A DNA stretch of 64,000 nucleotides from Macrostomum lignano (Eukaryota), in contig NIVC01001315.1 of the NCBI GenBank assembly GCA_002269645.1, forward strand, positions 1 to 64,000, written 5' to 3'. The translations under genes and the position numbers were made by a program. Positions 620-45,255 of this stretch are shown here, in pieces; position 1 is the first letter of the stretch; every line of letters begins with the position of its first letter. A model generated the notes under the pieces. The model saw nothing but the letters and a program-made list of their open reading frames with translations. It was not told the DNA's origin and made no database searches.

Positions 620-3600
620 TTACCGAAACGCACTTTTTACACAAAAGAACTTCCTCCGCGTGGTGTCCGAACACGCTGTGCGGTTGGCGTGGACTTTGAC
701 ACCGTAGTGCGTGTCAAGGCCAAGGTAGAAACAGTTTCGAGCTAGCAGCTCCTCAGCGGTCATGGTACTGGAGAACTTTTCATAGTTGCTTCCAGCAGGC
801 ATGACGCTCCCGTCAAGCAGCTGAGGAAGCAGCTCAATCCAGCTGTGAACGCCAATGTTGAGCTCTTTTCGGCTTACAAAATAGTGAGTCCAGTCTGCAA
901 TTTTTAATGGTGTTGACTGAGCGACTATGCCAAGCGCCTAAACTAGCATTCAGTTTCATAAACCTGAGATGTCTGACTCTGAGACGGTGTGTGGTCAAAT
1001 AGCAGTTTATTTGAAAAATCGCTATTGATCTTTTGAGCTTGTAAGTGTACGCTAGCTTCTCTGCTAAGCTTTGCCATAGACGGAGGCCATAGAAAATCTT
1101 TTGCGTAAGAAAAATGACAGAGCATGCATAGACTCTGAGACTGATCTAACGTTAAAATTTCTTATGGACCATAGCAGCTGCATAGTTAAGAAACCGTCAA
1201 TGACCTGCAAGTTTGAAGAAGAAATTCGTCTTCGGATCATCCAGTGCTATTACCGAAATTTTTCAAATAAACTGGTATTTGACCACACATGTCTCAGAGT
1301 CTATGCTCCTTAAGATTTTTTAAAGCAAAATATTGACTATGGCAGCTGTGTATGGCAAAGCTTGGCAGAAAAGACACTTCTGTGCTCAATAACTCGCCTC
1401 TGGAGCAATTTTTCGCAACCAAATGTTTGTGGGAAAAACTTACAAATGTTTACTGTGGACCTGTTAAATTACTGTGCTAGGCCTAACTGCTAACTCACAG
1501 TGAGCGCACAAAGTGTTACCCTTTTTTTTGGGACACCCGTTATAAGCATTCTTAAGCAGTATTAAGCCAAGGAGTTCTATAATTAGCAACCTGGAATGGA
1601 AACAAGTTTTTCAGTTTTACCTCGAGGCCAGACTAGCATAGACAGAGCCATAGACATTCAGTGCTGGCTCCTTGTTCTTTACAATTGGCGTGGCCTCATG
1701 AGGTAAAACTCGTTTCCGCTCTAGATTGCTAATCATAGAACTCCTGGACTTAAGCTTTACTTTCGAAATATACAAGTTGTAAAAACTTATATGCATAAGA
1801 GTTTTTTATTTATTGAAGTCGGCCATAGATAATTGCAGCGGGCGGGCTGCCGTCTTTAAAGAATAAAAATGATAAAATGATTCATCCATGGCTGCCCTGC
1901 ATTTCACCCCGTTTCAACAGCCTGGGCTAACTATAACTGTCTATGCCAATTTTAGGGTTAGTGAAGGCTAGGGTTCATGAAATCGGATTGCCAGCAGTTC
2001 AGTATATTGAAATTTCGAATATGTGAAAGGAAACCTTGTAGAAAAATAGGTGTGCTATCCAAATGTCTATCCAATACTGGCATAAGTTCTGCTTTAAAAG
2101 GTTGCAATAGACCTGATCTCTACATTAAAGGCGTAGTAGTTTGAAGATCAATAGAATGACAGTTTTTATTCAAATGGAAGCACTCACACTTGAAGAAGTG
2201 CTCCTTCATGATGTCCAACTCATTTTCGTCCATGGGAAACCAAAGCACGGAGTTCTGATGGGCGCAGAGCTCGGCGGAGCCGGTCCAGGCCAGCATGTCG
2301 GTGCTGCGCAGGTAGGGCGCGTAGCAGGAGCCGCGGTAGCCGAACCAGCCCGGGCTGCAGGGGGTGCCGTCTGGGAGGAAAGGGTTTGATAAAGCTTTAC
2401 TTATTATAGGGGTAGCTCAAATCCCCTGAGTTGTGTATACCATCTGGTCTAAGAATAAGTTTTAGCCTAGTGGTTAGAGCGTCTAATTCACGACTGAAAG
2501 GTCGGGGGTTCGATTCTCGACACACCCAGAGCAATTGTGCCCTTGAGCAAGACAGTTGCTTCAGTTCACCCAGCTGTAAAATGGGTACTAGCATTAGCTG
2601 GGGTAACTGAGGCTGTGTGTGGCGACCCCAGGTCCATGGACTGAACAGCTGTAAGCAGCCTTCAGATGCGCTGCGCAATAGCTGCGGCTGAGCTGCCGGT
2701 TGCACATCTGCCCATTAGGGCAGGTGTAATCAATTATTATTATGTTTTTTAGTCTAATAAGCGTTTGATCGAATTACCTGCTGCAGGGACCTGGGGTTTC
2801 AGCCATGAATTGCATCGTTATTATCCCGTGTCATTTGTAGGAGCTGCAGGGACCTGGGGTTTCAGCCATGAATTGCATCGTTATTATCCCGTGTCATTTG
2901 TAAGAGCTAAACCAATTCATTATTTATTAAGGAGTTCGATAAATTTGATGGCCCCGCTTGCGTTCCTGTCAAACTGAGCTGCTCAAAGTAGTTCGGAAGC
3001 TTACCGATCATGCTGCAGAAAACTCTTGTTCCACTATCAGGGGCCGTGGAGGTGTTAAAGGTGCCTGTCAACTGGTAGAAGTTGCTCTCGTAGACATCCG
3101 CATCTTCCTGCTGCTCCTTGCACGAGCGGAACTTTTTCACCTGCGTGGCCAGCGTGAAGATGTTGTAAATGCTGCCCGCTCCTCCGCAACTCTCGTTTGA
3201 TGCTCGGCACTCGAAGTTGCACTGAGCCTGCGGCACCTGACTGGCGTTTTGAATGACATCGCTCAGGCAGGTGCATGTGACGTTGCGGATCATAGCGTAC
3301 AGGCTGCTGGGGAAGGCCTTGCAGTAGGACTTGCAGGCGGCTGAGCTAAGCAGCTGCATGGCGGTCTCAGACACCACGAGGAGCGGCGGGATCGATGCGA
3401 CAGAGTAGCAGCCGTCTGCAAAGAGCAGCGAACGCTTCTTAAGCAAGTGCTACAGAATAACTTAGCAATAAGCATTGTTAACGGAGCGCATTCTGAAAGC
3501 CTATGGACTTCTGTGCATCCCAATAAATAAATAATTTAAAATATCAGCATATTAGCTCTTATTAGCTAGTATCAGTTTTATCTAAAAAAAGGTTAAGATT

Positions 3601-6600
3601 TTTTTCTGCGGGTCAAAAGTTAACTTTTTGGCTTTGAACCAATCACTTTCCAGACTAACTCTGCCCAACGCTGCATGCAACAAGCGGGCGCCCTCACCAA
3701 ACGAGTCGTACACAGAGAAGAAGCCCCAGGGCCCGCTGTCAGCCGTGGCATTTCCGCCACAGAACTCGGACGCGTTGCACAGCGACAGGCAGCGGAAGTT
3801 CCTGGCCTCCAGCAAGCCCCGGCTCAGCACGAACGGAATCGTCTCGTTGGACTCCTGGTCGGGAACGATGCCAGTGAGGTTCAGGCTGAAGCAGTAGCAG
3901 CTGCTGTAGTTGGCGGCGGCCATTTGGAATTTCTGGGTGTAGCAGGCCCGCCTGCAGTCGCTGACTGACATCGGGGCTGGGAGGCTGCTTTGCAGATGAG
4001 TGCTTGAGCCGCTCAGCCGTTCCAAGATTTCAGGCCACGTGAAGCAGCCGCGATAATAGGACTGGTCTGCGGTGGAGCGGATTGGGTAATGGGACTGGTC
4101 TGCGGTGGAGTGAATTGGGTAATGGGACTGTTCTGAGTTGGAGCGGATTGGGTAATGGGACTGGTCTGCGGTGGAGCGGATTGGGTAATGGGACTATTCT
4201 GAGTTGGAGTGGATTGGGTAATGGGACTGGTCTGCGGTGGAGCGGATTGGGTAATGGGACTGGTCTGAGTTGGAGCGGATTGGGTAATGGGACTGGTCTG
4301 AGTTGGAGCGGATTGGGTAATGGGACTGATCTGCGTTGGAGCGGATTGGGTAATGGGACTGGTCTGCGGTGAAGCGGTGGAGTGGAGTAGTCCTACAGCG
4401 ATACAGGAGCAGAAAAAAAGGACTCAAGACTGACCTTCCCTAATCGCTACAACTCAACCTTGCCGAATGACGAATACCGACCGAATAATCTATCCTCGCC
4501 TCGTAGCGAACTACTAATTCTGTGTAAACTGTTTATTTGTTTATTTAAACCCCTGTCGTTGCTAACCATGCGGGAAAATCACCCCTTCTTCGGCAGGGAC
4601 GAACAGTTATGACATCTGTAAAATAGACACATATAAATCCCAAATCCCAAATCCTGAATTCTTAATCCCGGATCCCCAATCCCAAATTCTTAATCCCGGA
4701 TCTTATATCGCGGATCCCAAACTGCACTGGAATATTTCAATGTACTTACATTGGCACGTGTTCAAGTCGATTGCAGTAGTAAAGTTTAAGTTTTGTGTCC
4801 AAATCATTGTACGAATCCTGAATAAAAATACGCGGGCTAAGGCTTATTCCGGTGTCCAGTCTAAAAGATGACGTTATGAGTAAATGTACATTTCCTTACT
4901 TTCTGTTCCAGTCAAACGAGTTCCTGCATTCGTTTTCGATTTCCTGGTCGAATCGCCGTCCCTTGTAGCCGCTCAGGCAGCGAAAGCGCACCGAGAAGCC
5001 GTCAACGACCTCCTGCCTGTCAGCTGTTGGCGCCGGGGAGATAAGCCAGGACTGTGGGCCCGGCTGCGCGTGCTGCGTCCAGCAAAGCGGAGCTGGCGGA
5101 GGAGGAATCTCGGTTGAATGAATTTTTTTCAACTTCAAGACTGGACAATAAAGCGGGTTAGCTAATTTGCAGTTTTCTATGCAAATGCATTGACAAGATA
5201 CGAAATTATCAGCTTTTCCAATTCACTGTACCCTTGTATTGTATTTGAGCAAGACACTGACTCTGCATTGCTTCAGTTCACCCAGCTGTACAATAAGTGC
5301 CCAGCATTAACTGGGGTAATTGAGGGCGTGTGTTGCGACCTCCCAGTCCTTAGAATGAACAGGCTGAGCTGTCCGTTGCACATTTGCCCATTTAGGACAG
5401 GAGTAGTCTATTATTATATTATTATTATTATTGTTGTTGTTATGACTATTATGATTATTATTACTTCTACTACAACTGCAGTCTCTACAGAAATTTCACA
5501 CACGTTCACACAGTCCCAGCAACCCTTTATAGTTGAGCATAAGTACCTTTACAGTGAGGGAGCGCGACAGTCTCTGTGTTGCTAGGGAATGTGGTTGACG
5601 TTAGAAACCGATTATCCAATGAATAGTAAGTCGCTATCCAGGTACCACCGGAGGTGCAGACCAGCTTGGCTCGCGCTGAACCGAAGACAGAGGGCCACGG
5701 CCTGTAGAAATCTAAGTTCGGGTTCGAGCAGTTCACCTCTATGGTCGCTCCGGTCGTGAAGTTGAAGGTGGAGTTCAGGCCCGGGTTCAGTATCGCGTAC
5801 GAGTGCGTGGGGTCGAACTGGGGCTCCTGGGGACACGTGATCACTGGAACAGGTGGGGCGGGTTCTGAGTCACTGCGGCACTAAATTTGCACACGTGAAA
5901 ATACGCAGTTTTCATGCTTTTCTCGCTCAAAGTTCCGCGTACTAATCAGCACATTAATCAGCACACTAATCAGCACACTAATCAGCACACTAATCAGCAC
6001 ATTAATCAGCACACTAATCAGCACACTAATCAACACACTAATCAGCACACTAATCAGCACACTAATCAGCACACCAATCAGCACACTAATTAGCACACCA
6101 ATCAGCACACCAATCAGCAAACTAATCAGCACACCAATCAGCACACCAATCAGCACACTAATCAGCACATTAATCAGCACACTAATCAGCACACCAATCA
6201 GCACACCAATCAGCACACTAATCAGCACACCAATCAGCACACTAATCAGCACACCAATCAGCACACTAATCAGAACACTAATCAGCACACCAATCAGCAC
6301 ACTAATCAGCACACCAATCAGCACACCAATCAGCACACTAATCAGCACACCAATCAGCACACCAATCAGCACACTAATCAGCACACCAATCAGCACACTA
6401 ATCAGAACACTAATCAGCACACCAATCAGCACACTAATCAGCACACCAATCAGCACACTAATCAGCACACCAATCAGCACACTAATCAGCACACTAATCA
6501 GCACACTAACCAGCACTGCAATCAGCACACTAACCAGCACACCAATCAGCACACCAATCAGCACACTAACCAGCACACCAATCAGCACACCAATCAGCAC

Positions 6601-9600
6601 ACTAATCAGCACACTAATCAGCACACTAACCAGCACTGCAATCAGCACACTAACCAGCACACCAATCAGCACACCAATCAGCACACTAACCAGCACACCA
6701 ATCAGCACACCAATCAGCACACTAATCAGCACACTAATCAGCACACCAATCAGCACACTAATCAGAACACTAATCAGCACACCAATCAGCACATCAATCA
6801 GCACACTAATCAGCACACCAATCAGCACATCAATCAGCACACTAATCAGCACACCAATCAGCACATCAATCAGCACACCAATCAGCACACCAATCAGCAC
6901 ACTAATCAGCACACTAATCAGCACACCAATCAGCACACTAATCAGAACACTAATCAGCACACCAATCAGCACATCAATCAGTACACTAATCAGCACACCA
7001 ATCAGCACACTAACCAGCACACCAAACAGCACACTAACCAGCACACTAACCAGCACACCAATCAGCACACCCTAATCAGCACACCAATCAGCACACACTA
7101 ATCCGCACACCAATCAGCACACCAATCAGCACACACTAATCAGCACACACTAATCAGCACACCCTAATCAGCACACACTAATCAGCACACCAATCAGCAC
7201 ACCCTAATCAGCACACCAATCAGCACACTAATCAGCACACTAATCAGCACACTAATCAGCACACTAATCAGCACACCAATCAGCACACCAATCAGCACAC
7301 CCTAATCAGCGCACTAATCAGCACACCAATCAGCACACCCTAATCAGCACACCAATCAGCACTCTAGTAAGCAATAGTACAGAAAACAATCATTGAGCCC
7401 AGAAAACAGGAACTGAAAGTAGAAAGCAGGCCGCTAAGTCAAGTTCCTTGCCTTCGCACTCGAGACTCGGCTCCGCGATGATCTGCGGCGACAGCGTGGT
7501 GTCGGGGCCGTTGCCGACGCTCCAAAACGTCACCAGCCAGCCATCAAAAGTGCACGTCAGGTTCGCATAGTTGACCAGGCCATTTGGCACGCCCGAAATC
7601 CGATAGCCGACGGTTGGGCTGTTGCAGCTGTAAGTTACGTTGGCGTTGTAAGAGTTCTTCTGGTCCAGGACGCCCAGGTCAGCGCTGGTCTCATTCATGG
7701 AGCTCGAATCGAACTCAGCACACCGGTGGGCTGAAATGTCCAGGTAAATTGATTTAAGCAGCGGATGAGCTGTCTCCATTCATCAATCCGAAGCAACACC
7801 CAGTTAAGACTCTGGTTAAATCTGTAGGCGCTGAAGTGATCAAGCTTAAACATCACAGTCAACCAATGAAAGTGCTCAAACAAGCAGAAGCTGAGAATGC
7901 GGCCCGGTCTCAGCTAACAGAAAGCAGTAAAGTACAATGGAAACATCTCCCAATGCGAAACGACTGAAAATGCCGGATAAAGATGATTTACGGGAGTCAA
8001 AGGCAGGATGCATCACTCACGAATGCACTGGGGCAGCACAGGCTGGACGTTGCCCAGCAGCTCCGGTGGCTGAACGGACTGCGGCCTGGTGTCGCCCTCC
8101 GTGAAGAAGGTCCTCGACCAGCCTTTGCCCTCCAGACAGTCGAGTCGCATCCAGTTGGACCTGTTCTCATTGTTAAAGTAGAACCCGCTCCCTTTTTTGC
8201 ATGTGACGTTCACGTGGCTGCCAACGGCTGACAGGGGCCCGGTGGGATCGCTCGATACGAAGCGATACTTTGTGTTGTCGATAAACAGGTTTGTGCACTT
8301 GGTGTCTGGAATCAAAGTTTGATAAGCTGTCTTGGCATTCGAAAAAACCGCAGTTAGTTTCTAAGCATTTTGATAACACTAGCTGTAAGAAATCACTTTA
8401 CAATGATGGATGTCGCTAACAGTTTTCGAGTTTTTAGTCAACTCGGGTTGAGGATAAACCCGTTCGCACCGTCTGTGTTAGATAGTGTAGCTTCTGCTAA
8501 GGTGTTTTCGCTGGGGTGTGCGCTTGGGTGTGCACTGGGGTGTGCACTGGGGTGTGCACTGGGGTGTGCACTGGGGTGTGCGCTGGGGTGTGCACTGGGG
8601 TGTGCACTGGGGTGTGCACTGGGTGTGCACTGGGGTGTGCACTGGGGTGTGCACTGGGGTGTGCACTGGGGTGTGCACTGGGGTGTGCGCTGGGGTGTGC
8701 ACTGGGGTGTGCACTGGGGTGTGTGCTGGGGTGTGCACTGGGGTGTGCACTGGGGTGTGCACTGGGGTGTGTGCTGGGGTGTGCACTGGGGTGTGCGCTG
8801 GGGTGTGCGCTGGGGTTAATGCCCTGCTAACGTTTTTGCTTTTTATCCGCTTGCTCTTATTTTACTCTAATCTCTTGGCTGGCTGGGTGCACCAACCCCC
8901 CTCCATATGCTGGCCGGGTGCACTAACCTCAACCCCCATATGCTGGCCGGGTGCACCAACCTGAAACCCCGTATGCTGGCCGGGTGCACCAACCTCAACC
9001 CCCATATGCTGGCCGGGTGCACCAACCCCAACCCCCATATGCTGGCCGGGTGCACCAACCTGAAACCCCGTATGCTGGCCGGGTGCACCAACCCCAACCC
9101 CCATATGCTGGCCGGGTGCACCAACCTGAAACCCCATATGCTGGCCGGGTGCACCAACCCCAACCCCCATATGCTGGCCGGGTGCACCAACCTCAACCCC
9201 CATATGCTGGCCGGGGCCGGGTAACCCTAAAGCGAGTAAAGAGCAGCTCAGTGCCTACCGAACGCATCATAGACGGACAAGAAGCCCAAGGCTCCGCTTT
9301 CGTCCGTGGCCTCGCCGCCGCAGAACTCCAACTCAGCGCACTCCGACAGGCAGCGAAAGTTGCGGTCTTCCAGTTCAGCCTTGCTGAGCACGAACGGAAC
9401 TGTCTCATTGGGGCCGAAGCTTCCCGCCGAGCTGCTGCGGTTGAAGCAGTAGCAGCTGGCGGGCTTCGCCGCAGCCAACTGAAAACTCTTGTAATAGCAG
9501 GTGCTCCTGCAAGCACTGACGGAAATCGGTTGCGTCAAGTTGTCCATGAGGTGGGCGCTGGAGCCGTTCAGTCTGTCCTGGATTTCTTGCCAGGAGAAGC

Positions 9601-12600
9601 AGCCGCGGTAAAAGGACTGGTCTGCAGTGTTTCAGGAGAGATAAAGTAGGTCAATAGAAGGCCCACGTCAGGGTGGGGGGCCGTAGCCCAGCGGTCTAGC
9701 GCAGGCTCTGGTGTGCCAGCGACCCAGGCTCGATTTCAAGTGCAGCCACATTAATTTGGGGCTGAATTGGAATCTCGGCTTGGCTCTGCTCGTGCAATTA
9801 ACGGCCTTGAGAGCCAACCCCCCAAGGCGCAGTGAAGTGTACATGCCTAACGATATTATAAAGTTAGGGCCGCTGTACACTCCTGTGTGAGTGTGTGCCT
9901 GCGTACGTATCCGCGCGCTTGTATGCCTGCTCAGGGGAGTCGGCGGAATGGGCAGTAATGCCTCTCGCCGGTTGTGTGCCTATGTCGCTTAAAGTGCGCC
10001 AGGGTGCACACAACCCCCCTGCCTCTAATAAATAGGCCCACGTCAAGATACTCGACTGCAAAATAGACACTCACGCAGGCATATGTTCGGGTCGGAACCG
10101 GCGGTGAAGTTGTCGTCCTGTGACCATGACATCACTTCGCAGCTGCAGGTTTAAAAATGTATGCTCTTTAAATGCGTTCTGGGGGCATAGCAGCTGGAAG
10201 GTCCATTTTCTTACTTATTGATGGCGTCCATCTGCGCCTGGCACACGCTGCTGATCTCCTTGTCAAAGCGCCTGCCCGTGTAGCCGCTGAGGCAGCGAAA
10301 CCGCGCGGTGAAGCCCGCCGTCACCTCCGTTCTGTTGGCCGACGGAGCTGTCGAGACAAGACGGGACTGCGGGCCGGGCTGCGCCGGGTCCAGCCAGCAG
10401 ATTCGGTCTGCGAAATGGTTAGTTGTCATCCTTAAGTATATAAATACCTTAGGATATGAGGCGTTTTCTGAGTAGAAGATACTCATATTTCTTTCGGGCA
10501 GCATCCGTAATCCGAGACAGTACGTCAGATGTGGCATGATTTTAAATTCCATGAGTAGCAATGGAAAGAAACAATTGAAATTATTATAACAAACACCAGC
10601 TCCTAGATTGACGGGTGCTTGGCCCGAGACAAATGAGGATGGGACGAACTTTGCCACCTATTGGACGAAATGACCGACTGTAGATAATAACTCAGACGAA
10701 GTAACCGGGCAAGAACTGTCTGCAACCCCTGCTATGCATACCTGTGCAACGCGGCACAGCAACAACATCATCTGTGCTGAAGTTCCTGCGCTCCTGAACG
10801 ACCGATGGCTGGCCTAGAGAATAGATGGTGAGGTTCCAGGTGCCGGCCGGGGTGCACAGCAGCTCTGCTCGCCTAGAGCCGACTTCGCTCTTGCGGTAGA
10901 ACTCCTGCTGGCTGTTGGCGCAGGTCACTTCGAGCGTAGCATCGACCGAGAAGTTGACGCTGGAGTTCAGGCCGGCGTTCGTGAGCCGGTACACGTGACT
11001 TGAATCGTACTGCGGCATGGGCTGGCACCAAATCGTTGGAATGTCTTCAAAGCAGGGGTTATTAGCTCTTAGCTTTTTGAAAGACATTGTGCACTCTAAA
11101 ATAGACAACATACTCTCACATCAGCACATTCCAAGAAATCCAAATGCTAGGTACGTGGATGATAAAAACGACTGTTTCAGGGGATGGTGCACTCAAAAAG
11201 TAGACAAGAAAAAAATGTGGTTAAATAAATTTATCTTTACCTCTACATACTCAGGTTACACAAGGGTCTTGTCATAAACCTTTGCACACAAATCTTTAGA
11301 TAGCAGGGATCGTGCAAGTATCAGCCTTTTGTAACAGTATCAAAATCTGCGTCAATAAGACACGCCATCCTGACAGCATTCCATGTTATTTGGAGTTAAT
11401 TGGGAAACGTCATTCCCAAACAACGTCAAAGAAGACACGGCAGCCTGACTGCATTCCATGTTATTTGGAGTTAATTGGGAAACGTCATTCCCAAACAACG
11501 TCAAAGAAGACACGGCAGCCTGACTGCATTTCATGTTATTTGGAGTTGATAGGGAAACGTCATTCCCAAACAACGTCAAGGAAGACACGCCATCCTGACT
11601 GCATTCCATGTTATTTGGAGTTAATTGGGAAACGTCATTCCCAAACAACGTCAAGAAAACACGACCAGGGTTTGCCGGTTTCCAGTTGCCTACAGCTGGG
11701 ACAGGACGGAGTGAGGACGGGGCTGCCATGCGGCTTGCATCTACTCACGAATGCACTGGGGCAGCACAGGCTGGATGCTGCCCAGCAGCTCCGTTGGTTG
11801 AACGGACTGCGGTTGCGAGTCACCCCCGGTGAAGAAAGTCCTCGACCAGCCTTTGCCCTCCTCGCAGTCGAGTCGCAACCAGTTGGCCTGGCTGCTGTTC
11901 TCAAAGTAGGCGCCAGCACCAATTCTGCACGTGACGTTCACGTGGCTACCGAATGCCGTCGACAGTCCGTTTGGGTCGCTTGAGTTGTACAGATACTGGC
12001 CGAGGTCGATTGTCACGTTGGCGCACCGGCTGGCTGCAAGTGAGGATAGATTTGGTGAGCTGATTGCCTACGAAACCAATGCCAAAAGGTGAAGACCTGA
12101 GCATCCAGCATTAATTGGTTAGTTTCACGCTTGTTTAGGCCAACCCTGTGTGCTGTGTGCACCCTGGCGCACTTTAAGCGACATTGTCACACAATCGGCG
12201 AGAGGAATTACTGCCCATTTTGCCGACTCCCCTGAGCAGGCACACAAGCGCGCGGATACGTACGTAGTCATACATACAGGCACACACTCACACAGGAGTG
12301 CACAGCGGCCTTAACTTTTTTATCGTTAGGCATGTACACTTCACGAAATATCACAAACCCGAAATATCACAAACCCGAAATATCACAAACCCGAAATGGA
12401 ATTGACCCGAAATATCACAAAGCCGAAATATCGTAACTCCAAAAACCAAAATAGCGTTGGACATTGCTAGCACTTTCGGAGTTATAATATTTCGGGTTTG
12501 TGATATTTCAGGTTTGTGATGTTTCAGGTTTGTGATGTTTCAGGTATTATATATTATATATTTGATATTTGCACGATTTGCAAGTGCTGCGTCCTTCTAG

Positions 12601-15069
12601 TCTAGTAGACCTTGGTAGAGACTATGCAGCTGTGTACGGAACCAGCCGCAGAAGTCCTGAACCAGTGAATGCGTGATCCAGTAAATTTATGAACCAGTAA
12701 GTGCATGAACCAGTACATGAACCAGTAAATGCATGAACCAGTAAATGCATGAACCAGTAAGTGCATGAACCAGTACATGAACCAGTAAATGCATGAACCA
12801 GTAAGTGCGTGGACCAGTAAGTGCGTGGACCAGTAAGTGCATGAACCAGTACATGAACCAGTAAATGCATGAACCAGTACATGAACCAGTAAATGCATGA
12901 ACCAGTACATGAACCAGTAAATTTATGAACCAGTAAGTGCATGAACCAGTACATGAACCAGTAAATGCATGAACCAGTAAATGCATGAACCAGTAAGTGC
13001 ATGAACCAGTACATGAACCAGTAAATGCATGAACCAGTAAATGCATGAACCAGTAAATGCATGAACCAGTAAATGCATGAACCAGTAAGTGCATGAACCA
13101 GTAAATTTATGAACCAGTAAATTTATGAACCAGTAAATGCATGAACCAGTAAATGCGTGAACCATTAAGTGCATGAACCAGTAAATACGTGAACCAGTAA
13201 ATGCCAAGGACCACTAGTAGATAGTCTTAAGTAGATAGACTTAAGTAGTCCGTGGTAAATGCATGAACCAGTAAATGCGTGAACCAGTTAATGCGTGAAC
13301 CATTAAGTGCATGAACCAGTAAATGCGTGAACCATTAAGTGCATGAACCAGTAAATGCATGAACCAGTAAATGCGTGAACCAGTTAATGCGTGAACCATT
13401 AAGTGCATGAACCAGTAAATACGTGAACCAGTAAATGCATGAACCAGTAAATGCGTGAACCAGTTAATGCGTGAACCATTAAGTGCATGAACCAGTAAAT
13501 GCGTGAACCATTAAGTTCATGAACCAGTAAATGCATGAACCAGTAAATGCGTGAACCAGTTAATGCGTGAACCATTAAGTGCATGAACCAGTACATGTCT
13601 GAACCAGTAAATGCATGAACCAGTAAATGCGTGAACCAGTTAATGCGTGAACCATTAAGTGCATGAACCAGTACATGTCTGAACCAGTAAATGCATGAAC
13701 CAGTAAATACGTGAACCAGTAAATGCATGAACCAGTAAATGCGTGAACCAGTTAATGCGTGAACCATTAAGTGCATGAACCAGTAAATGCGTGAACCATT
13801 AAGTTCATGAACCAGTAAATGCATGAACCAGTAAATGCGTGAACCAGTTAATGCGTGAACCATTAAGTGCATGAACCAGTACATGTCTGAACCAGTAAAT
13901 GCATGAACCAGTAAATGCGTGAACCAGTTAATGCGTGAACCATTAAGTGCATGAACCAGTACATGTCTGAACCAGTAAATGCATGAACCAGTAAATACAT
14001 AAGTCAGTCCCCTGACCTTTGCACATTGGCAGCTTCAGATCCTCGTCGAGCAGCTCGGTGGCCTGCGTGGTCCAAGGCCGGGACTGGTCGTCTGTGAAGA
14101 AGGTGAGCGACCAGCTCTGGTCCTCCAGGCAGTCCAGCCGCATCCAGTTGGACTGGTTGCTGTTCTCAAACACGAATCCCCAGCCAGCCTTGCAGGTGAT
14201 GTTCACGTGACTGCCCACCGTGTTAACAGGACTGTCGGGGTTGCTCGAGTTGTACAGGTACTGGTCGGTATCGATGGTCAGGTTGGCGCACTGGTTGTCT
14301 GCGGATTTGTTCAGGGTTTGTTCTTGTGCTAGCATTATACTCGGCGGACTGGGTACTGTTTCAGTGGTTGCCGCGGCACTGGGTACTGTTTCAGTGGTTG
14401 CCGCGGCACTGGGTACTGTTTCAGTGGTTGCCGTGGCACTGGGTACTGTTTCAGTGGTTGCCGCGGCACTGGGTACTGCTTCAGTGGTTGCCGTGGCACT
14501 GGGTACTGTTTCAGTGGTTGCCGCGGCACTGGGTACTGTTTCAGTGGTTGCCGCGGCACTGGGTACTGTTTCAGTGGTTGCCGTGGCACTGGGTACTGTT
14601 TCAGTGGTTGCCGCGGCACTGGGTACTGTTTCAGTGGTTGCCGCGGCACTGGGTACTGTTTCAGTGGTTGCCGCGGCACTGGGTACTGTTTCAGTGGTTG
14701 CCGCGGCACCGGGTACTGTTTCAGTGGTTGCCGCGGCACTGGGTAGTTACATGGTGAGACAAAACAAAAACTTAAACCTGAAAATAGTTGCTAATTTACG
14801 CACGGTAAGAGAACAACTGATGGACAGCGTAAGCTGGCAAGCTGAGGAATGAGAAGCCAAGTGCAAGTAGATGGAAGGTCGGGATTTTTAGCTGACAAAA
14901 AAATCAAGGCAAGACAATACTCTTGTCTGCAGGTAGCTGCTACTGCAACTAGCCCTACGCCTAGTCTCCAGCCCATACCATTTGTGGCGCCGGCGGCTCT
15001 GGCGAATGGCGCTGCCGGGATGAGCAGCAGCAGCAGCTGGACGGTCATCTGGGTGATCGCCGCAGCCAT
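620..15069 (-). CDS. Secreted mosaic lectin/complement-like protein (~1314 aa): signal peptide, 8 CCP/Sushi-like modules, 3 WSC domains, fibrinogen-like stub, C-type lectin-like domain
   Basis: Hand-built exons: 15069-14979, 14298-14017, 12033-11749, 11044-10742, 10407-10215, 10142-10075, 9621-9259, 8305-8021, 7730-7452, 5843-5547, 5092-4900, 4817-4750, 4066-3698, 3415-3005, 2370-2188, 894-620. They sum to 3945 nt with compatible phases. Signal peptide [25 protein letters not shown]; CCP-like C..C..C..W..C exons; WSC YRGCF...C...C...CYC...C...CGG; [17 protein letters not shown]...W..SAELC...FFC. An extra 3' exon after a possible donor at 623 cannot be excluded. Confidence 0.75.
960..1390. mobile_element. 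Degenerate foldback/MITE-like element
   Basis: Imperfect inverted arms: ctgctaagctttgccatagac...gcatagactctgagac (~1060-1142) versus gtctcagagtctatgc...gtatggcaaagcttggcag (~1291-1370). 975-1020 also pairs with 1260-1300. Confidence 0.4.
1562..1753. mobile_element. MITE flanked by TTAA
   Basis: Inverted arms of ~60 bp (ggagttctataattagcaac...ttttacctcgaggcca versus tggcctcatgaggtaaaac...attgctaatcatagaactcc), with TTAA at 1562-1565 and 1750-1753. Confidence 0.55.
2462..2745 (+). mobile_element. tRNA-derived SINE, family A (full length)
   Basis: A-box TAGCCTAGTGG (2463), B-box GGTTCGATTC (2507), body CCCTTGAGCAAGACA...GCTTCAGTTCACCCAGCTG, (TTA)n tail. A second copy lies at ~5228. Confidence 0.65.
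2778..2903. repeat. Direct tandem duplication, 60 bp x2
   Basis: gctgcagggacctggggtttcagccatgaattgcatcgttattatcccgtgtcatttgta occurs twice. Confidence 0.9.
4060..4375. repeat. 33-bp minisatellite overlapping a splice acceptor
   Basis: Unit gactggtctgcggtggagcggattgggtaatgg; starts at 4060, 4093, 4126, 4159, 4192 and onward. Confidence 0.9.
5228..5465 (+). mobile_element. SINE family A, 5'-truncated copy
   Basis: Shares TTGAGCAAGACA...TTGCTTCAGTTCACCCAGCTGTA...GCATTAACTGGGGTAA...CATTTGCCCATT and an ATT-rich tail with 2462-2745. Confidence 0.65.
5941..7362. repeat. 12-bp minisatellite (TAATCAGCACAC/CAATCAGCACAC)
   Basis: Direct reading; gives the artefactual poly-VLIS/G ORF 5881-7068. Confidence 0.95.
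8508..8816. repeat. 12-bp minisatellite (GGGGTGTGCACT)
   Basis: Direct reading. Confidence 0.95.
8886..9213. repeat. 30-bp minisatellite (gggtgcaccaacctcaacccccatatgctggcc-like)
   Basis: Direct reading. Confidence 0.9.
9671..10033 (+). mobile_element. tRNA-derived SINE, family B (full length, with TSD)
   Basis: Head GGGGGCCGTAGCCCAGCGGTCTAGCG...GGCTCGATTTC (A/B-box-like), AT-rich end, and a 12-bp direct repeat AGGCCCACGTCA at 9659-9670 and 10034-10045. Confidence 0.65.
11359..11662. repeat. 75-bp tandem repeat x4
   Basis: gacacg units start at 11359, 11434, 11509, 11584; each contains the palindromic TGGGAA-acgtca-TTCCCA. Confidence 0.9.
12154..12344 (-). mobile_element. SINE family B, partial copy in inverted orientation
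   Basis: Reverse complement matches ~9833-10012 (gtgaagtgtacatgcctaacgat...gtcgcttaaagtgcgccagggtgcacaca). Confidence 0.7.
12345..12545. mobile_element. Foldback-like element with internally repetitive arms
   Basis: (cccgaaatatcacaaa)n on the left and (tttgtgatatttcagg/cggg)n on the right, with a short spacer. Confidence 0.55.
12655..14000. repeat. 13-bp-based minisatellite (GCATGAACCAGTA[A])
   Basis: Direct reading; interrupted at ~13205-13255; higher-order units in the right half. Confidence 0.95.
14347..14745. repeat. 30-bp minisatellite x13
   Basis: Unit gggtactgtttcagtggttgccgcggcact, in intron 1 of the mosaic gene. Confidence 0.95.
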
Positions 15070-18171: not shown

Positions 18172-18583
18172 CTAGACCTTGTCAGCGGGCCTGGGCGGCG
18201 GCGCAGGCTGCGGCCGCTCCCAGCCGTACAGCATTGTGGCGGCGATGACCAGCGAGGCGCCGGCGAAGAACGTGGCGCTGGGCACGAAGTCGGCCAGCCA
18301 CAGCCAGGACACCAGGGTGCTCAGGATGATGGACACCGCGTTGGCGAAGCCCTTCAAGATGTTGTCGGCATACTTAATCACCGCGGCGATCACCAGGCCG
18401 CCGAAGGCGTGCAGGCCGATGACCAGCCACACCCAGCCCGTGTAGCCTTGGAAGAAGCCGTCGGCGGCCACCCGCTGCCAGTCCGAGGCCGCCACGCCGC
18501 CCAGGCCGAGGAGGGCGCCGAACAGACCGAGCTGAATGTTGCGCATCCACACTGAGGCCTGCGAGCCCTGCGGAGTAGTAGTG

Positions 18584-18655
<72 letters not shown>

Positions 18656-18657
18656 GC

Positions 18658-18724
<67 letters not shown>

Positions 18725-18756
18725 GTAGTAGTAGTAGTAGCAGTATTAGTAGTAGC

Positions 18757-18797
<41 letters not shown>

Positions 18798-18882
18798 CAG
18801 TAGTAGTAGTAGTAGTAGTAGTAGCAGTAGTAGTAGTAGTAGTAGTAGTAGTAGCAGTAGTAGTAGTAGTAGTAGTAGTAGC

Positions 18883-18940
<58 letters not shown>

Positions 18941-18942
18941 GC

Positions 18943-18983
<41 letters not shown>

Positions 18984-18984
18984 C

Positions 18985-19039
<55 letters not shown>

Positions 19040-19041
19040 GC

Positions 19042-19106
<65 letters not shown>

Positions 19107-19152
19107 CAGTAGTAGTAGTAGTAGCAGTAGTAGTAGTAGTAGTAGTAGTAGC

Positions 19153-19196
<44 letters not shown>

Positions 19197-19197
19197 C

Positions 19198-19228
<31 letters not shown>

Positions 19229-19265
19229 ATAGTATTAGTAGTAGCAGTAGTATTAGTAGTAGTAA

Positions 19266-19297
<32 letters not shown>

Positions 19298-19299
19298 GC

Positions 19300-19372
<73 letters not shown>

Positions 19373-19401
19373 ATAGTAGTAGTAGTAGTATTAGTAGTAG
19401 C

Positions 19402-19480
<79 letters not shown>

Positions 19481-19494
19481 ATAGTATTAGTAGC

Positions 19495-19543
<49 letters not shown>

Positions 19544-19596
19544 ATAGTAGTAGTAGTAGTATTAGTAGTAGCAGTAGTAGTAGTAGTAGTAGTAGC

Positions 19597-19662
<66 letters not shown>

Positions 19663-21368
19663 TGCTTACAGGCTGTCAGTAATTTATCAGGCAAAGAAAA
19701 TACGAGCATTTCCGAAACGCACCTTTAAAATCTTTTCAAAGTAGACGCCGGCAAAGCCGCTGCTGCAGCAGGCGGAGAGCACGGCCACCAGACCCACCAT
19801 CTGGCTGGAGAGACTCGCTGACTGCTCAGCCGTCGCCGCTGCCGATGACGAGTCGTCCTGGCTGGGCAGCTGGACCAGCGCCACCCCGGTGAAGAGGATG
19901 AGCAGCGCGAGCCACTTGGTGCCGGAGATGGCCTTGCGCAGCATCAGGACGGAGAAAACCGCTGTGGTGAGAATCTTCAGCTGGTAGGTCACCTGCGAAT
20001 GGCATCACGCAAATTAGCTGATGTGTGAGTCATAGAGAGCTGATGTGTGAGTCAAAGAGAGCTGATGTGTGACTCATAGAGAGCTGATGTGAGTCATAGA
20101 GAGCTGATGTGAGTCATAGAGAGCTGATGTGAGTCATAGAGAGATGATGCGAGTCATAGAGAGCTGATATGTGAGTCAGAAAGAAAGGATGAGTCAGAGA
20201 GTTGATATGTGAGTCAGAGAGCTGATATGTGAGTCAGAGAGTTGATATGTGAGTCAGAGAGCTGATATGTGAGTCAGAGAGTTGATATGTGAGTCAGAGA
20301 GCTGATATGTGAGTCAGAGAGTTGATATGTGAGTCAGAGAGTTGATATGTGAGTCAGAGAGAAAGGATGAGTCAGAGAGTTGATATGTGAGTCAAAGAGC
20401 TGATATGTGAGTCAGAGAGTTGATATGTGAGTCAGGGAGTTGATATGTGAGTCAGAGAGCTGATATGTGTGTCATAGAGGATGAGTCAGAGTTGATATGT
20501 GAGTCAGAGAGCTGATATGTGAGTCATAGAGGATGAGTCAGAGAGTTGATATGTGAGTCAGAGAGAAAGTATGAGTCAGAGAGCTGATATGTGAGTCATA
20601 GAGGATGAGTCAGAGAGCTGATATGTGAGTCAGAGAGTTGATATGTGAGTCAGAGAGAAAGCATGAGTCAGAGAGTTGATATGTGAGTCAGAGAGAAAGC
20701 ATGAGTCAGAGAGTTGATATGTGAGTCAGAGAGCTGATATGTGAGTCAGAGAGTTGATATGTGAGTCAGAGAGTTGATATGTGAGTCAGAGAGCTGATAT
20801 TTGAGTCATAGAGGATGAGTCAGAGAGTTGATATGTGAGTCAGAGAGAAAGGATGAGTCAGAGAGCTGATATGCGAGTCATAGAGGATGAGTCAGAGAGC
20901 TGATATGTGAGTCATAGAGGATGAGTCAGAGAGCTGATATGTGAGTCATAGAGGATGAGTCATAGAGCTGATATGAGTCATACATAGACTACAACGCCAC
21001 AAGCTAGAAGCGCTCACCTGGTACAGCGCGGCATTCAGATGCGACAGCGCAATGAACAGCAGGTTGTTCTGCAAGGTGTACAGGCCGGCCGGCACCGCCA
21101 GCTTCAGGGTGTCCTGCCAGTTCACCAGCAGCTCGGTGCGTAGATCGCGAATTGTCAGCCTGGCTGAGAAGCCGTGCTCCCTAGCAACCAGCAGCAGGCA
21201 GGTGAGCAGCTTCACGGCCTCCGCCATGACGACCGCCGTGGAGGTCAGGTAGAGCTTCTGGCCGGGCTCCGCCGCGCTGCGGGTGTAGCGCATGGCCAGC
21301 ACCACCGAGGAGGTCTGGAGCACCAGCAGGGTGAGGCTGATCCACTTCAGCTGCTGCTGGCTGGCCAT
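18172..21368 (-). CDS. UDP-sugar (UDP-GlcNAc/UDP-Gal) Golgi transporter, SLC35A2/A3 family, ~338 aa
   Basis: Exons 21368-21018, 19992-19723, 18567-18172 (all phase 0). Motifs [89 protein letters not shown]2 versus A3 orthology not resolved. Confidence 0.92.
18573..19662. repeat. (AGT)n microsatellite, ~1.1 kb
   Basis: Direct reading with AGC/ATT/AAT variants; source of the poly-L and poly-V ORFs. Confidence 0.98.
20028..20975. repeat. ~20-bp minisatellite (gagctgatatgtgagtcaga)
   Basis: Fills intron 1 of the transporter gene. Confidence 0.95.
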
Positions 21369-22818: not shown

Positions 22819-23951
22819 TACGAGGAGCGTACTGAAAGTTTTGAGATACGACTGACTCATAAGTCATAACTGCACGAATTTTCATATACATACTCTACCA
22901 CCCTTAGGATGATTGGGTAGTAATTTTCAGCCTTTGCGCTGTTGTTAATTTTTCACAATCACTCTTCAAAGTCAATACCCCCTACCAAACTGTACTTGCT
23001 CCAATGGAGTTGACAAACCACGACTTTTGTGTCATGATTGTTTACAACCAGCAAAAAGGTCTCGCGTAGGAGCAGTGCGTTGAAAGTTTACATGCTGTCT
23101 TTGGAGACCAAGCCCCTTTAAGTGCCACAGTTTTTCGGTTGTACAGGAAATTTAAGTGGGGCCAAAGCCTCCAAGCGGTGCGCCCGCTGGGTGCCCCACA
23201 ACCTGACGGAGGACCAGAAAGCGGAGAGGGTACTTTGGTGCGAGTTAATGCTCGAAAGATTCGATTCTGGGACCTCGAAGTGATGCTGGGAGATCATCAG
23301 TGGCGATGAGACCTTGGTCTACCAGTACGACCCGGAAACCAAGCAGCAGTCGGCAGTTTGGCTCCTTCCGGACGATGCCACTCCAACGAAGGTCAAGCGG
23401 GCCCGCAGCGTCGGGAAGCAGATGGTGGCGGCTTTCTTCAGCCAGGCCGGCTACCTGGCCACTGTAGCGCTCCAAGACAGGCGGACAGTCAATGCCGACT
23501 GGTATACTAACCAGTGCCTGCCGCTCGTGTTCGATGCTTGGCGCAGACGCCGGCCGCGCACCGGACTTCGTGGCCTGCTGCTGCACCACGACAACGCCAG
23601 TGCGCACACGGCTGCTGCAACTTTGGCATTTCTGGCCGAGAATGGAGTCCAGTTGGTGACGCATCTCTCATATTCCCCTGACCTGGCACCCTGCGACTTC
23701 TTTCTCTTCCCTTTCAAGAACCAACTGTGCGGGACTCGGTTTGAGAGCCCTGAAGCAGCAAGAATCGAGCTCGAGCGGGTGGTGTCAGCAGTGCCAGAAG
23801 AACAGTGGGCTGGAGCCGGGGTTCAGTGCTTTCACCGGATGAGAAAATGCGAGCAAGCTGGTGGCAACTACTTTGAAAAATTGTGACAGAAATTTTGCTT
23901 CAGACATTTGTGGTTTAGGCGTATCTCAAAACTTTCAGTGCGCCCCTCGTA
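22819..23951 (+). mobile_element. Mariner (D,D34D) DNA transposon, internally deleted and inactive
   Basis: TIRs TA-CGAGGAGCGTACTGAAAGTTTTGAGATACG and CGTATCTCAAAACTTTCAGTGCGCCCCTCG-TA with TA duplication. Transposase motifs WVPHNL, GDET, HHDNASAH, YSPDLAPCDF, with 34 residues between the last two Asp. Confidence 0.93.
23034..23886 (+). pseudogene. Mariner transposase remnant
   Basis: N-terminal HTH-like MIVYNQQKGLA*EQCVESLHAVFGDQAP with a stop, a deletion before RCARWVPH, and a stop TGA at ~23281. The catalytic half is open (23314-23886). Confidence 0.85.
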
Positions 23952-25116: not shown

Positions 25117-27180
25117 TCAGAGATCGTGCACCTGGCAGTTGCGCTCGTAGCTGTACACCTGCTTGAGAAACTGCATGACCACATTGGAGCCCGAGGTGAC
25201 GATCTCTGCTGGAATGTGGCTGAGTCGGCAGTGCTCAATGTTGAGCAGCTCCAGCTTTGAGCAGACAGACAGAGTGGACGGCAGGTTGTCTAGGTTGGCG
25301 TTCTCGTTCAGGTAGAGCTCCTTGAGGGAGGACATCTGGCCGATCTCACGGGGCACATCGCGCAGGCAGTTCTCGCTGAGGCGCAGCACAGTCAGATGCA
25401 GCAGGGTGACGCCCAGCGGGATGCTGGTGAGCCGGTTGGCGGTGAGGTTGAGCTCGCGCAGTTCGTGTAGGTGACCGATCTCGGCTGGCAGGGTCTCCAG
25501 GCAGTTGTACTCCAGTTCAAGCTTGCGCAGCGAGGTGCAGCCGCTGATGCCCTCAGTCAGCTGCTGGAGGTTGTTGTGGCTGAGCACCAGGGTCTCGAGG
25601 CGCTGCAAGTGGCGGATGTCGCTGGGAATCTCCGTCAGGCTGTTGTTGCCGAGGTCCAGAGAGACCAGGTGGCGCAGGTAGGGCATGTCCTCGGCCAGCA
25701 GAGACTGGATGGAGTTGGTGTTTAGGTTCAGCATGGTGAGGTGCTTGGCGGAGCTGAAGATGCCGGCTGGGATGCCGGAGATCTGGTTGTTGTCCAGCGC
25801 CAGAGACAGCGAGCTGGCGAACTGGGCGGGGCCGCCGGGCGGGAAGTGGGCGAAGTGGTTGCGGGACAGCACAATGCTGCCGAGCCGCCGCATGCTGGCG
25901 AGCATGCCCTCCGGCAGGGTGGAGATGTCGTTGTTCTCTATGTTGAACTCCTCCAGCTTGTGGCAGTTGGTGAGGGTCTTGGGGATGCTGGTGAGGCGGT
26001 TGTACTTCAGGCTGAGCCGGGTGAGGCTGCGCAGCTCGCCGATGTTCTCGGGCAGGGCGCGCAGGCAGTTGTGCTGCAGGTTGACGTCGTGCAGCAGGAT
26101 GCAGCGGCCGATCTCCTCGGGGATCTGCTCGATGCGGTTGTGGGACAGGTCCAACTTGATGAGCTGGCGCAGGGTGCCGATGGAGCTGGGGATGGTGCCC
26201 TGGATCTGGTTGCGGTTCACCACCAGCACCATGAGGCTGATGAGGTTGCCGATCTCCGGGTCGATGGCGGTGATCTTGTTGTAGGTGAGCAGCAGCTGGG
26301 TGAGGCCGTACAGCTTGTAGATCACGGGCGGGAACTTGCCGTCCAGGCGGTTGTGGCGCAGGTCCAGCACCTTCAGCTTGGTGAGGTACTGCATGGCCAT
26401 GGGCAGGGTTGTGAGGCAGTTCTGCTGCAGCATGAGCTTATCCAGGCTGACCATGGCGCCGATCTGCTCAGGCAGGTGCGCCAGCTTGTTGTCGTACAGG
26501 TACAGCTCGGTGACGAAGTTCAGGTCGCGCACGGAGGGCGGCAGCGCCATCAGCCGCTTGCTGGACAGATCCAGGATGGCCTCGGCGTTGGCCTTGCACT
26601 TGGCCACCTCCTTGGACACGTCCGGGTTCTTCTCCTTCTTGTTGGCGGCCGACTTGCGCGGCGCCTCCAGCTTCTTGCTCGATGGTGTCTGCACCATAAC
26701 GGTCTTCGGCTTGCTGCTCACGTGCGGCTGGTGCCGGCTGTCCACCGCCACGGAGCTGAAGCTGCCGGCCAAGTTGTCCACCCCGCCACCGCCGCTGCTG
26801 GTGCTGGTGGCGGGGAGTGGCGGGGCAGCGGATGGCGCCGAGACGGCAGGAGCGGCGGCGGCTGCGGCGGCGTTGGTGGCGGCTAGGCGGGCGGCCGGCA
26901 GGTTCTGGTAGTCGTCGCCGCTGCCAGGCTGGATGGCAAAGTAGGCGTCCGGCTCCATCACGCTGGTGAAGAACTGCGGCTCCGAGTCCAGCAACTCCTG
27001 CGGGATGCCGCCGGTGCCGCCGCTGCTGCTGGAGCCGAACAGGTGGTACTCGCGGTTGTAGTTGCTGAGCCGCTCGGAGATTCGGTAATCGGACAGCTGG
27101 GGAGGCGACTGGGAGGGCGGCTGGCCCGAGGAGGCCAGGGAGCTGGTCTGGCTCACGGAGCGGTCCACGGGGCGGGCCAT
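25117..27180 (-). CDS. SHOC2: Leucine-rich repeat scaffold SHOC2/SUR-8 homolog, 687 aa, single exon
   Basis: Uninterrupted ORF with about 20 LRRs. SHOC2-specific segments I recognise: KCKANAEAILDLSSKRL, ELYLYDNKL, FPPGGPAQF, IPAGIFSSAKHL, C-cap CSKLELLNIEHCRLSHIPAEIVTSGSNVVMQFLK. Confidence 0.9.
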   Translation of the reverse strand: MARPVDRSVSQTSSLASSGQPPSQSPPQLSDYRISERLSNYNREYHLFGSSSSGGTGGIPQELLDSEPQFFTSVMEPDAYFAIQPGSGDDYQNLPAARLAATNAAAAAAAPAVSAPSAAPPLPATSTSSGGGGVDNLAGSFSSVAVDSRHQPHVSSKPKTVMVQTPSSKKLEAPRKSAANKKEKNPDVSKEVAKCKANAEAILDLSSKRLMALPPSVRDLNFVTELYLYDNKLAHLPEQIGAMVSLDKLMLQQNCLTTLPMAMQYLTKLKVLDLRHNRLDGKFPPVIYKLYGLTQLLLTYNKITAIDPEIGNLISLMVLVVNRNQIQGTIPSSIGTLRQLIKLDLSHNRIEQIPEEIGRCILLHDVNLQHNCLRALPENIGELRSLTRLSLKYNRLTSIPKTLTNCHKLEEFNIENNDISTLPEGMLASMRRLGSIVLSRNHFAHFPPGGPAQFASSLSLALDNNQISGIPAGIFSSAKHLTMLNLNTNSIQSLLAEDMPYLRHLVSLDLGNNSLTEIPSDIRHLQRLETLVLSHNNLQQLTEGISGCTSLRKLELEYNCLETLPAEIGHLHELRELNLTANRLTSIPLGVTLLHLTVLRLSENCLRDVPREIGQMSSLKELYLNENANLDNLPSTLSVCSKLELLNIEHCRLSHIPAEIVTSGSNVVMQFLKQVYSYERNCQVHDL

Positions 27181-34133: not shown

Positions 34134-34195
34134 GAAAGTGGGGGGCGCGGAATCGGGGCTTAGCAACTGAGATCCAGGCAGCGGGCTGCCTTTTT

Positions 34196-44996: not shown

Positions 44997-45076
44997 TGCC
45001 AGACGCGGGGCGGACTTTGGAGAGGCTGCGCCTGGATGGAGATGGTATGGTAGGGTTTGACAGGTGTGGGTACCAA

Positions 45077-45255
45077 TGAGACAAGTACCTATGAGACAAG
45101 TACCCATGAGACAAGTACCCATGAGACAAGTACCCATGAGACAAGTACCCATGAGACAAGAACCCATGAGACAAGTACCCATGAGACAAGTACCTATGAG
45201 ACAAGTACCCATGAGACAGGTACCCATGAGACAAGTACCCGTGAGACAAGTACCA
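45077..45255. repeat. 15-bp minisatellite (gagacaagtacccat)
   Basis: Direct reading. Confidence 0.93.

Follow-up and report, generated by a model that had tools for sequence, protein, structure and literature searches.

In the flatworm Macrostomum lignano, a stretch of 64,000 nucleotides (assembly GCA_002269645.1, contig NIVC01001315.1, positions 1 to 64,000; referred to here as the window) carries on its minus strand, from 15069 down to 620, a gene whose predicted product is a mosaic of CCP-like modules, WSC domains and one C-type lectin-like domain (here CTLD). Our analysis confirmed that the predicted 16 exons make up a real coding gene and a single minus-strand unit. Taken as a whole, the locus is probably best explained as one 16-exon gene encoding a secreted and glycosylated mosaic protein that acts as a multivalent binder of glycans or other ligands.

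The gene model was built from the raw sequence by enumerating the AG and GT sites around each stop-free segment of the minus strand, where a series of stop-free, Cys-rich segments lies between 15087 and 620. Sixteen exons join into one coding sequence of 3945 nt that specifies 1314 aa, contains no internal stop, opens with an ATG at 15069 (G at both -3 and +4, with an in-frame stop seven codons upstream) and closes with a TAA at 622-620. Every intron ends in AG; 14 donors are GT, many of them reading GTGAGT or GTAAGT, and one, after exon 9, is GC in a typical GC context (AAG/GCAAGG, a slash marking the splice junction here and below). Thirteen introns are in phase 1 and sit at module boundaries, two residues past the last Cys of each module, while the two in phase 2 cut the fourth and eighth CCP-like modules (CCP4 and CCP8) into 63 + 22 codons, in both at the same point. 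The resulting order is a signal peptide, two successive sets of four CCP-like modules and a WSC domain, a third WSC domain, a linker with two Cys and the CTLD. The rebuilt model, with an open coding sequence, consistent phases and consensus splice sites throughout, agrees with the 16 phase-compatible exons, coordinates and module order proposed in the initial annotation of this DNA. The exons are listed below, with letters a to d denoting types of CCP-like module, identities given at the amino acid level between paired modules, dN/dS standing for the ratio of nonsynonymous to synonymous divergence, and A0A1I8JHH6 being a homologue from M. lignano that is described further on.

Exon 1, 14979-15069, minus strand: start ATG and signal peptide, the sole strongly hydrophobic segment; phase-1 donor ATG/GTATGG.
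Exon 2, 14017-14298, minus strand: CCP-like module 1, type a; Sushi E 0.015; dN/dS 0.35 against CCP2.
Exon 3, 11749-12033, minus strand: CCP-like module 2, type a; 65% identity to CCP5, dN/dS 0.40.
Exon 4, 10742-11044, minus strand: CCP-like module 3, type c; Sushi E 0.067; 46% identity to CCP7, dN/dS 0.27.
Exon 5, 10215-10407, minus strand: first part of CCP-like module 4, with a phase-2 donor; 57% identity to the first part of CCP8, dN/dS 0.32.
Exon 6, 10075-10142, minus strand: second part of CCP-like module 4 (W...C4), with the 63+22-codon split as in CCP8.
Exon 7, 9259-9621, minus strand: WSC domain 1 with 8 Cys, matched by PF01822 over model positions 1-82 (23.2 bits, E 8e-5); 59% identity to WSC2, dN/dS 0.25.
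Exon 8, 8021-8305, minus strand: CCP-like module 5, type a; aligned to A0A1I8JHH6.
Exon 9, 7452-7730, minus strand: CCP-like module 6, type b; GC donor; Sushi E 0.038; C-x4-C spacing over the junction kept in A0A1I8JHH6.
Exon 10, 5547-5843, minus strand: CCP-like module 7, type c, paired with CCP3; aligned to A0A1I8JHH6.
Exon 11, 4900-5092, minus strand: first part of CCP-like module 8, with a phase-2 donor; aligned to A0A1I8JHH6.
Exon 12, 4750-4817, minus strand: second part of CCP-like module 8; aligned to A0A1I8JHH6.
Exon 13, 3698-4066, minus strand: WSC domain 2 with 8 Cys; PF01822 E 2.4e-5, 24.9 bits; acceptor in the last unit of a 33-bp minisatellite; junction C-x-Y-Q-x-YYRGCF conserved.
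Exon 14, 3005-3415, minus strand: WSC domain 3 (~3415-3180; PF01822 35.1 bits) and the two-Cys linker (~3130-3005).
Exon 15, 2188-2370, minus strand: N-terminal half of the CTLD, with the long-form hairpin C..GW..C, alpha1 and alpha2; matches to CD94 (4e-5) and NKG2D (1.7e-8).
Exon 16, 620-894, minus strand: C-terminal half of the CTLD, without EPN, QPD or WND, and the TAA at 622-620; weak candidate donors in phase 1 (634) and in phase 2 (624).

The gene holds two five-module blocks in tandem, the first made of CCP-like modules of types a-a-c-d and a WSC domain, the second of types a-b-c-d and a WSC domain. Over six paired modules dN/dS is 0.25-0.40 with dS of ~0.6-1.7 (Nei-Gojobori), and purifying selection has thus acted on both copies of the block ever since they arose, long ago, by duplication. 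The gene was assembled through the shuffling of exons that carry phase-1 modules, and the five-module block was afterwards doubled in tandem within it. A tblastn search of the window for paralogues came up empty outside 620-15069. The mature protein carries 37 N-X-S/T sequons, compared to 14±3 in 1000 shuffles (maximum 25), it also contains 65 Cys, and the N-terminal signal peptide is the only source of hydrophobic 19-mers. The 1314-aa product is predicted to enter the secretory pathway and to be heavily N-glycosylated and disulfide-rich. CCP4 has a fifth Cys (NNCEV, model residue 386, exon 6, ~10139) that is missing in its duplicate CCP8 and makes the Cys total of 65 odd; its thiol could be free and serve in disulfide bonds between molecules.

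Exon 14 was searched with HMMER, exhaustively, against 1.84 billion cluster representatives. One cluster, represented by A0A1I8H2P9 of M. lignano, covers the whole exon including the linker (E 2.3e-21, 38% identity), and the second-best match is a protein with eight WSC domains, the two best both being from M. lignano. Both proteomes of this species (UniProt A0A1I8..., GenBank PAA...) are in the collection, in which no match to exon 14 is more than 38% identical. A cluster mate of A0A1I8H2P9, A0A1I8JHH6, which is annotated merely as 'WSC domain-containing protein', is colinear with model residues ~558-1310, from CCP5 to the CTLD, at 39% identity over ~750 aligned residues, and shares the module order CCP5-CCP6-CCP7-CCP8 (as a split module)-WSC-WSC-linker-CTLD. 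The alignment extends over all junctions from exon 8 to exon 16, and the residues at these are kept (C-x-Y/Q-x-YYRGCF, DSF/D/GCY, MI/D/GT), as is the C-x4-C spacing over the GC-AG intron. The gene described here may be a deep paralogue that has escaped annotation. At 39% identity A0A1I8JHH6 is a distant orthologue or an old paralogue of this gene, which is a lineage-restricted member of an uncharacterised family with its sole detectable relative in M. lignano. The gene is beyond chance because dN/dS lies at 0.25-0.40, sequons are in excess and an independent flatworm protein is colinear over the exon 8-16 junctions.

The same alignment bears on whether the locus might comprise a pair of neighbouring genes, one with exons 1-7 and the other with exons 8-16, or a duplicate in decay from which no single protein is made, both of which we consider very improbable. 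The model was drawn from genomic sequence alone, and the alignment to the sole external homologue begins at CCP5 and so does not bridge exons 7 and 8. However, A0A1I8JHH6 is itself truncated at its N-terminus rather than starting at CCP5, exon 8 has neither an ATG nor a signal peptide, and exon 7 ends in phase 1 at a good donor with no stop. All 16 exons are open, all splice sites are intact and dN/dS is well under 1.

As to the modules of this single gene, the CCP-like set reaches 32.9 bits against Sushi (PF00084; gathering score 20.7 bits) when summed over the whole protein. Four Cys columns are invariant in an alignment of the eight modules and also in one of 12, to which the homologue A0A1I8JHH6 contributed four, and a Trp is invariant across the six single-exon modules. 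Against the PDB, a profile of the eight modules matched CR1, MASP-1 and C4BP mixed with immunoglobulin noise. The 12-module profile retrieved nearly CCP proteins only, namely CR1 (8.4e-13), Crry (2.3e-4), DAF (2.6e-4), MASP-1, C4BP and MCP, with the immunoglobulin matches dropping to E>0.5 and with C1, C2, C3 and the Trp in register with the second CCP module of DAF. Hence, we consider the modules to be CCP-derived but atypical. The Pfam scan gave no Sushi match for the four A0A1I8JHH6 modules.

The three predicted WSC domains are solid assignments. PF01822 (gathering score 27.8 bits) matches the whole protein in three stretches at E 3.5e-14 and 53.2 bits. WSC3 exceeds the threshold by itself, and WSC1 and WSC2, which carry an insert of ~20 aa, fall just under it at significant E values and with full coverage of the model (positions 1-82). 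Each domain has eight Cys, spanning residues 415-508, 910-1005 and 1028-1102.

The CTLD, searched against the PDB as a single sequence, matched CD94 (4.3e-5), KLRD1, CLEC12A and CD69, with E values down to 5e-3 at the weak end, and a profile of the two flatworm sequences matched NKG2D (1.7e-8), CD94 (7e-8), CLEC12A, CD69 and more than 40 other CTLD chains. The domain has the long-form hairpin C-x2-GW-x6-C-Y, and its six Cys are kept in the flatworm homologue, to which it is 44% identical. None of EPN, QPD and WND occurs in residues 1163-1314. The domain is of the type found in natural killer (NK) receptors, without the ligand motifs for calcium and sugar, and by its motifs not a Ca2+-dependent lectin. 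The initial annotation had named CCP-like modules, three WSC domains and a CTLD lacking EPN, QPD and WND, and all three assignments withstood these searches, the nearest relatives of the CTLD being of the NK type.

Its further proposal, that a stub resembling the start of a fibrinogen-related domain precedes the CTLD, found no support. The segment in question is a linker of ~40 residues with two Cys which lies between WSC3 and the CTLD and runs straight into the latter. In the M. lignano copy 19 of 56 positions are identical, both Cys included, and the motif V-x-C-x-MIDGT is kept. Neither of the two linkers gave a match to Fibrinogen_C (PF00147) at E<=10, and no fibrinogen-related chain in the PDB was matched at E<=10 with the linker as a single sequence or as a two-sequence profile. 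The linker might still be a true remnant of the A subdomain of a fibrinogen-related domain, left when a CTLD replaced the rest. It has a conserved pattern, C-x(~10)-aromatic-x-Y-x-[LV]-x(~15)-V-[FY]-C-x-M, which resembles the N-termini of fibrinogen-related domains and of which the copy in M. lignano (GKYLVYG...AVYCYM) is the more typical example. This origin seems quite unlikely to us, not only for the failed matches in both searches but also because the remainder of such a domain, its B and P subdomains, is missing; an AlphaFold2 model of exon 14, comprising WSC3 and the linker, had a predicted local distance difference test score (pLDDT) of 31.7, too low for use. The linker is preferably described as a conserved segment lacking sequence support as a fibrinogen-related domain, the resemblance being a pattern-level lead only.

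Several observations weigh against reading the locus as a complete gene for a secreted, multivalent binder. Taken singly, all CCP-like modules stay below the Sushi threshold, the best three at 14-16 bits (E 0.015-0.067) and the other five with no match, and at 88-102 aa they exceed the canonical ~60, with an insert of 20-30 aa between the Trp and Cys4. An AlphaFold2 model of CCP5, with five paralogous modules as input, was all-beta but of low confidence (pLDDT 57.6, predicted template modelling score 0.52), and a Foldseek search of that low-confidence model against the PDB returned nothing at E<1. For the CTLD, Lectin_C (PF00059) scores 14.1 bits against a threshold of 22.6, and only the N-terminal half matches solved structures well, the C-terminal half being very divergent. 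The gene model derives from genomic DNA throughout, and multivalent extracellular binding of glycans or ligands, most likely as it is, is read from domain content. Moreover, the CTLD of A0A1I8JHH6 is followed by a further WSC domain (26.7 bits) and ~250 residues without domain assignment, and the C-terminus modelled here may be incomplete, with a possible membrane anchor beyond the window.

The distance from the stop codon to the window edge is 620 nt. The initial annotation described a secreted protein with no transmembrane segment, with which the lack of any hydrophobic 19-mer besides the signal peptide agrees; however, since the homologue extends past the CTLD and the gene ends near the window edge, this description is provisional and applies to the visible part. 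A gene longer than the window, in which the CTLD exon splices to further exons beyond coordinate 1 (with a fourth WSC domain and possibly an anchor) and the CTLD terminus is a truncation artefact, is unlikely in our judgement, though it deserves serious weight. Besides the ~330 aa by which A0A1I8JHH6 runs past the CVK at the end of the CTLD, including the WSC match, it is favoured by the nearness of the stop to the edge where introns of this gene reach 2 kb, by a phase-1 GT (AAA/GTGCGT, 634) exactly two codons past the last CTLD Cys, where other inter-module introns sit, and by a GTAATG that overlaps the stop codon. Yet the 15 donors in use are stronger than either candidate, the in-frame TAA comes naturally at the domain end, no WSC-like open segment is present in 1-620 of the window, and A0A1I8JHH6 is an automatic prediction that could be a fusion. 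The gene of 16 exons that closes at 622-620 is the preferred model.

For the product of this 16-exon gene, some properties of its modules are known from elsewhere: WSC domains bind glycans in fungi and form part of extracellular receptors in animals, strings of CCP modules serve as spacers and protein-binding scaffolds, and NK-type CTLDs bind protein or other non-sugar ligands. The CCP-like modules here would form a semi-rigid, glycosylated stalk that spaces the three glycan-binding WSC domains and the terminal CTLD, the latter binding its ligand without calcium. With WSC domains and a CTLD so spaced, the protein would cross-link or coat glycan-bearing material, such as mucus, matrix, secretions of glandular or reproductive origin or the surfaces of microbes, through contacts that would be multivalent and of low affinity. 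A role in pattern recognition, mucus or adhesion, as first suggested, would be reasonable. WSC-domain proteins recur among the prostate-gland and seminal-fluid candidates of M. lignano (PMC6953679, PMC4490696), so a role in glandular secretion would be as plausible as immune, mucus or adhesive roles. A bolder proposal makes the gene the founding described member of a macrostomid-specific family of secreted, multivalent lectin-like scaffolds, in which a new, elongated and glycosylated CCP subtype with the 20-30 aa insert displays WSC domains and a cryptic NK-type CTLD follows a fibrinogen-related relic. The family would act in a secretion peculiar to the lineage, such as seminal fluid, cement or adhesive, or mucus, in which WSC proteins of Macrostomum already figure; we regard this proposal as quite unlikely.

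Domain databases under-annotate the family, its homologue being labelled as WSC only while the CCP-like modules and the CTLD escape Pfam, and a reading of raw DNA alone arrived correctly at all 16 exons, the GC-AG intron and the pair of split modules among its features. The gene is also a clean example of phase-1 exon shuffling combined with intragenic block duplication in a flatworm-type genome, and it adds a candidate glycan-binding secreted protein in a clade where WSC proteins have been tied to reproductive gland secretions. It opens no new mechanism and resolves no long-standing question.

Long minisatellites occupy almost every intron of the gene, among them 5941-7366, 8511-8816, 8878-9215, 11350-11668 and 12658-14000, with periods of 12, 12, 33, 75 and 16 bp, respectively. 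The open reading frame (ORF) at 5881-7068 (395 aa, GVLISVLI), which arises from a 1.4-kb array of 12-bp units, and other long intronic ORFs of low complexity were rejected as minisatellite artefacts. Two arrays touch splice junctions, both read on the minus strand. In intron 1, just upstream of exon 2, an array of 30-bp units (14344-14745; 13.4 copies, 97% matches) keeps the frame of exon 2 open and would encode a Thr/Ser/Ala/Pro-rich, mucin-like repeat. Each of its units has an AG that fits the phase of the exon-1 donor, giving alternative acceptors for the junction of exons 1 and 2, and an alternative, longer exon 2 may run into the array. At the end of intron 12 and the start of exon 13, an array of 33-bp units (4054-4377; ~10 copies, 90% matches) consists of a tandemly amplified 3' splice site together with the first ~13 nt of exon 13 (...CCGCAG/ACCAGTCCCATTA...). 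This provides ~10 in-phase candidate acceptors for exon 13, with 11 aa added for each extra unit used; the flatworm homologue A0A1I8JHH6 favours the proximal acceptor at 4066.

Overall, the window is eukaryotic in character, with spliced genes and minisatellite-rich introns, and an Rfam search of it gave no match. The surrounding features are as follows.

18172-21368, minus strand: gene for a nucleotide-sugar transporter (Pfam Nuc_sug_transp) with exons 18172-18552 and 20946-21368; upstream neighbour of the mosaic gene on the same strand, its last exon ending at 18172.
18390-19744: near-pure trinucleotide repeat of ~1.3 kb that adjoins or overlaps the last exon of the transporter and reads as poly-Leu or poly-Val ORFs.
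23314-23886, plus strand: remnant of a mariner/Tc1-type transposase (Pfam Transposase_1, partial DDE domain).
25117-27180, minus strand: SHOC2/Sur-8-like LRR protein in an uninterrupted ORF of 687 codons with an Ala/Ser-rich, low-complexity N-terminus; apparently intronless, unlike vertebrate SHOC2.
31151-34166, minus strand: mitochondrial-type aconitase gene, spread over several long exons (Pfam Aconitase, lowest E 3.5e-71).
40900-48000: dense minisatellites, the source of numerous long ORFs of low complexity that overlap and lie on both strands (for example 40947-42107, 45789-46868, 47279-48007).
44463-45272: ORF with no Pfam match.

In comparison with known systems, the gene shares single features with several families. 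Scanned in full with Pfam at E<=10, the protein matched WSC and Sushi only, and not the Ig-link domain of lecticans. The obligatory domains of selectins, lecticans, polycystin-1, KREMEN and WSCD proteins are missing in that scan, so the protein is none of these. Selectins and the G3 region of lecticans likewise combine a CTLD with CCP modules within an extracellular adhesion or recognition protein, but in reversed order (CTLD-EGF-CCPn in selectins, EGF-CTLD-CCP in lecticans), with EGF domains, calcium-dependent CTLDs and no WSC domain, whereas the gene here has WSC domains and no EGF. Polycystin-1, KREMEN1/2 and WSCD1/2 have extracellular WSC domains with eight Cys, and polycystin-1 also pairs WSC with a CTLD. 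They differ in their other parts, which are all missing here: LRR, PKD, REJ and transmembrane segments in polycystin-1, kringle and CUB in KREMEN1/2 (kringle-WSC-CUB) and a sulfotransferase domain in WSCD1/2.

The CCP-string proteins CR1, DAF/CD55, C4BP and MCP, together with MASP-1, resemble the gene in their tandem modules on phase-1 exons, the four Cys and the Trp that follows Cys3. Also common to both is a G-Y/F motif just past Cys2, as is the alignment of C1, C2, C3 and W with CCP2 of DAF, and the CR1 and CR2 genes likewise have one type of module split over two exons. Their modules, however, are of ~60 aa without the 20-30 aa insert before Cys4, and the gene here lacks complement-related partner domains. 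The closest matches to the CTLD (1.7e-8 to 1e-4) are CD94, NKG2D, CLEC12A and CD69, which have in common with it the long-form hairpin, the six-Cys pattern and the lack of calcium and sugar motifs; these are vertebrate type II membrane receptors with a single CTLD, whereas here the CTLD ends a long mosaic protein that is predicted to be secreted.

M. lignano has many WSC proteins, some of them expressed in the prostate glands (PMC6953679, PMC4490696); its prostate and seminal-fluid candidates with WSC domains include Mlig-pro46 and RNA815_80.4. The seminal-fluid candidates described from Macrostomum are small WSC proteins and not mosaics of CCP modules and a CTLD. A0A1I8JHH6 retains every module Cys of the gene here and, in the linker, V-x-C-x-MIDGT, and differs in that its database entry is truncated at the N-terminus and extends ~330 aa past the CTLD. 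No report of an architecture combining CCP, WSC and CTLD was found in the literature, which agrees with the initial view, in which the architecture was not recognised from any described family; with a colinear, uncharacterised homologue in A0A1I8JHH6/A0A1I8H2P9, however, it is not unique. We therefore see in this gene a lineage-restricted new combination of known modules, brought about by ordinary exon shuffling and intragenic duplication, rather than a new kind of system.

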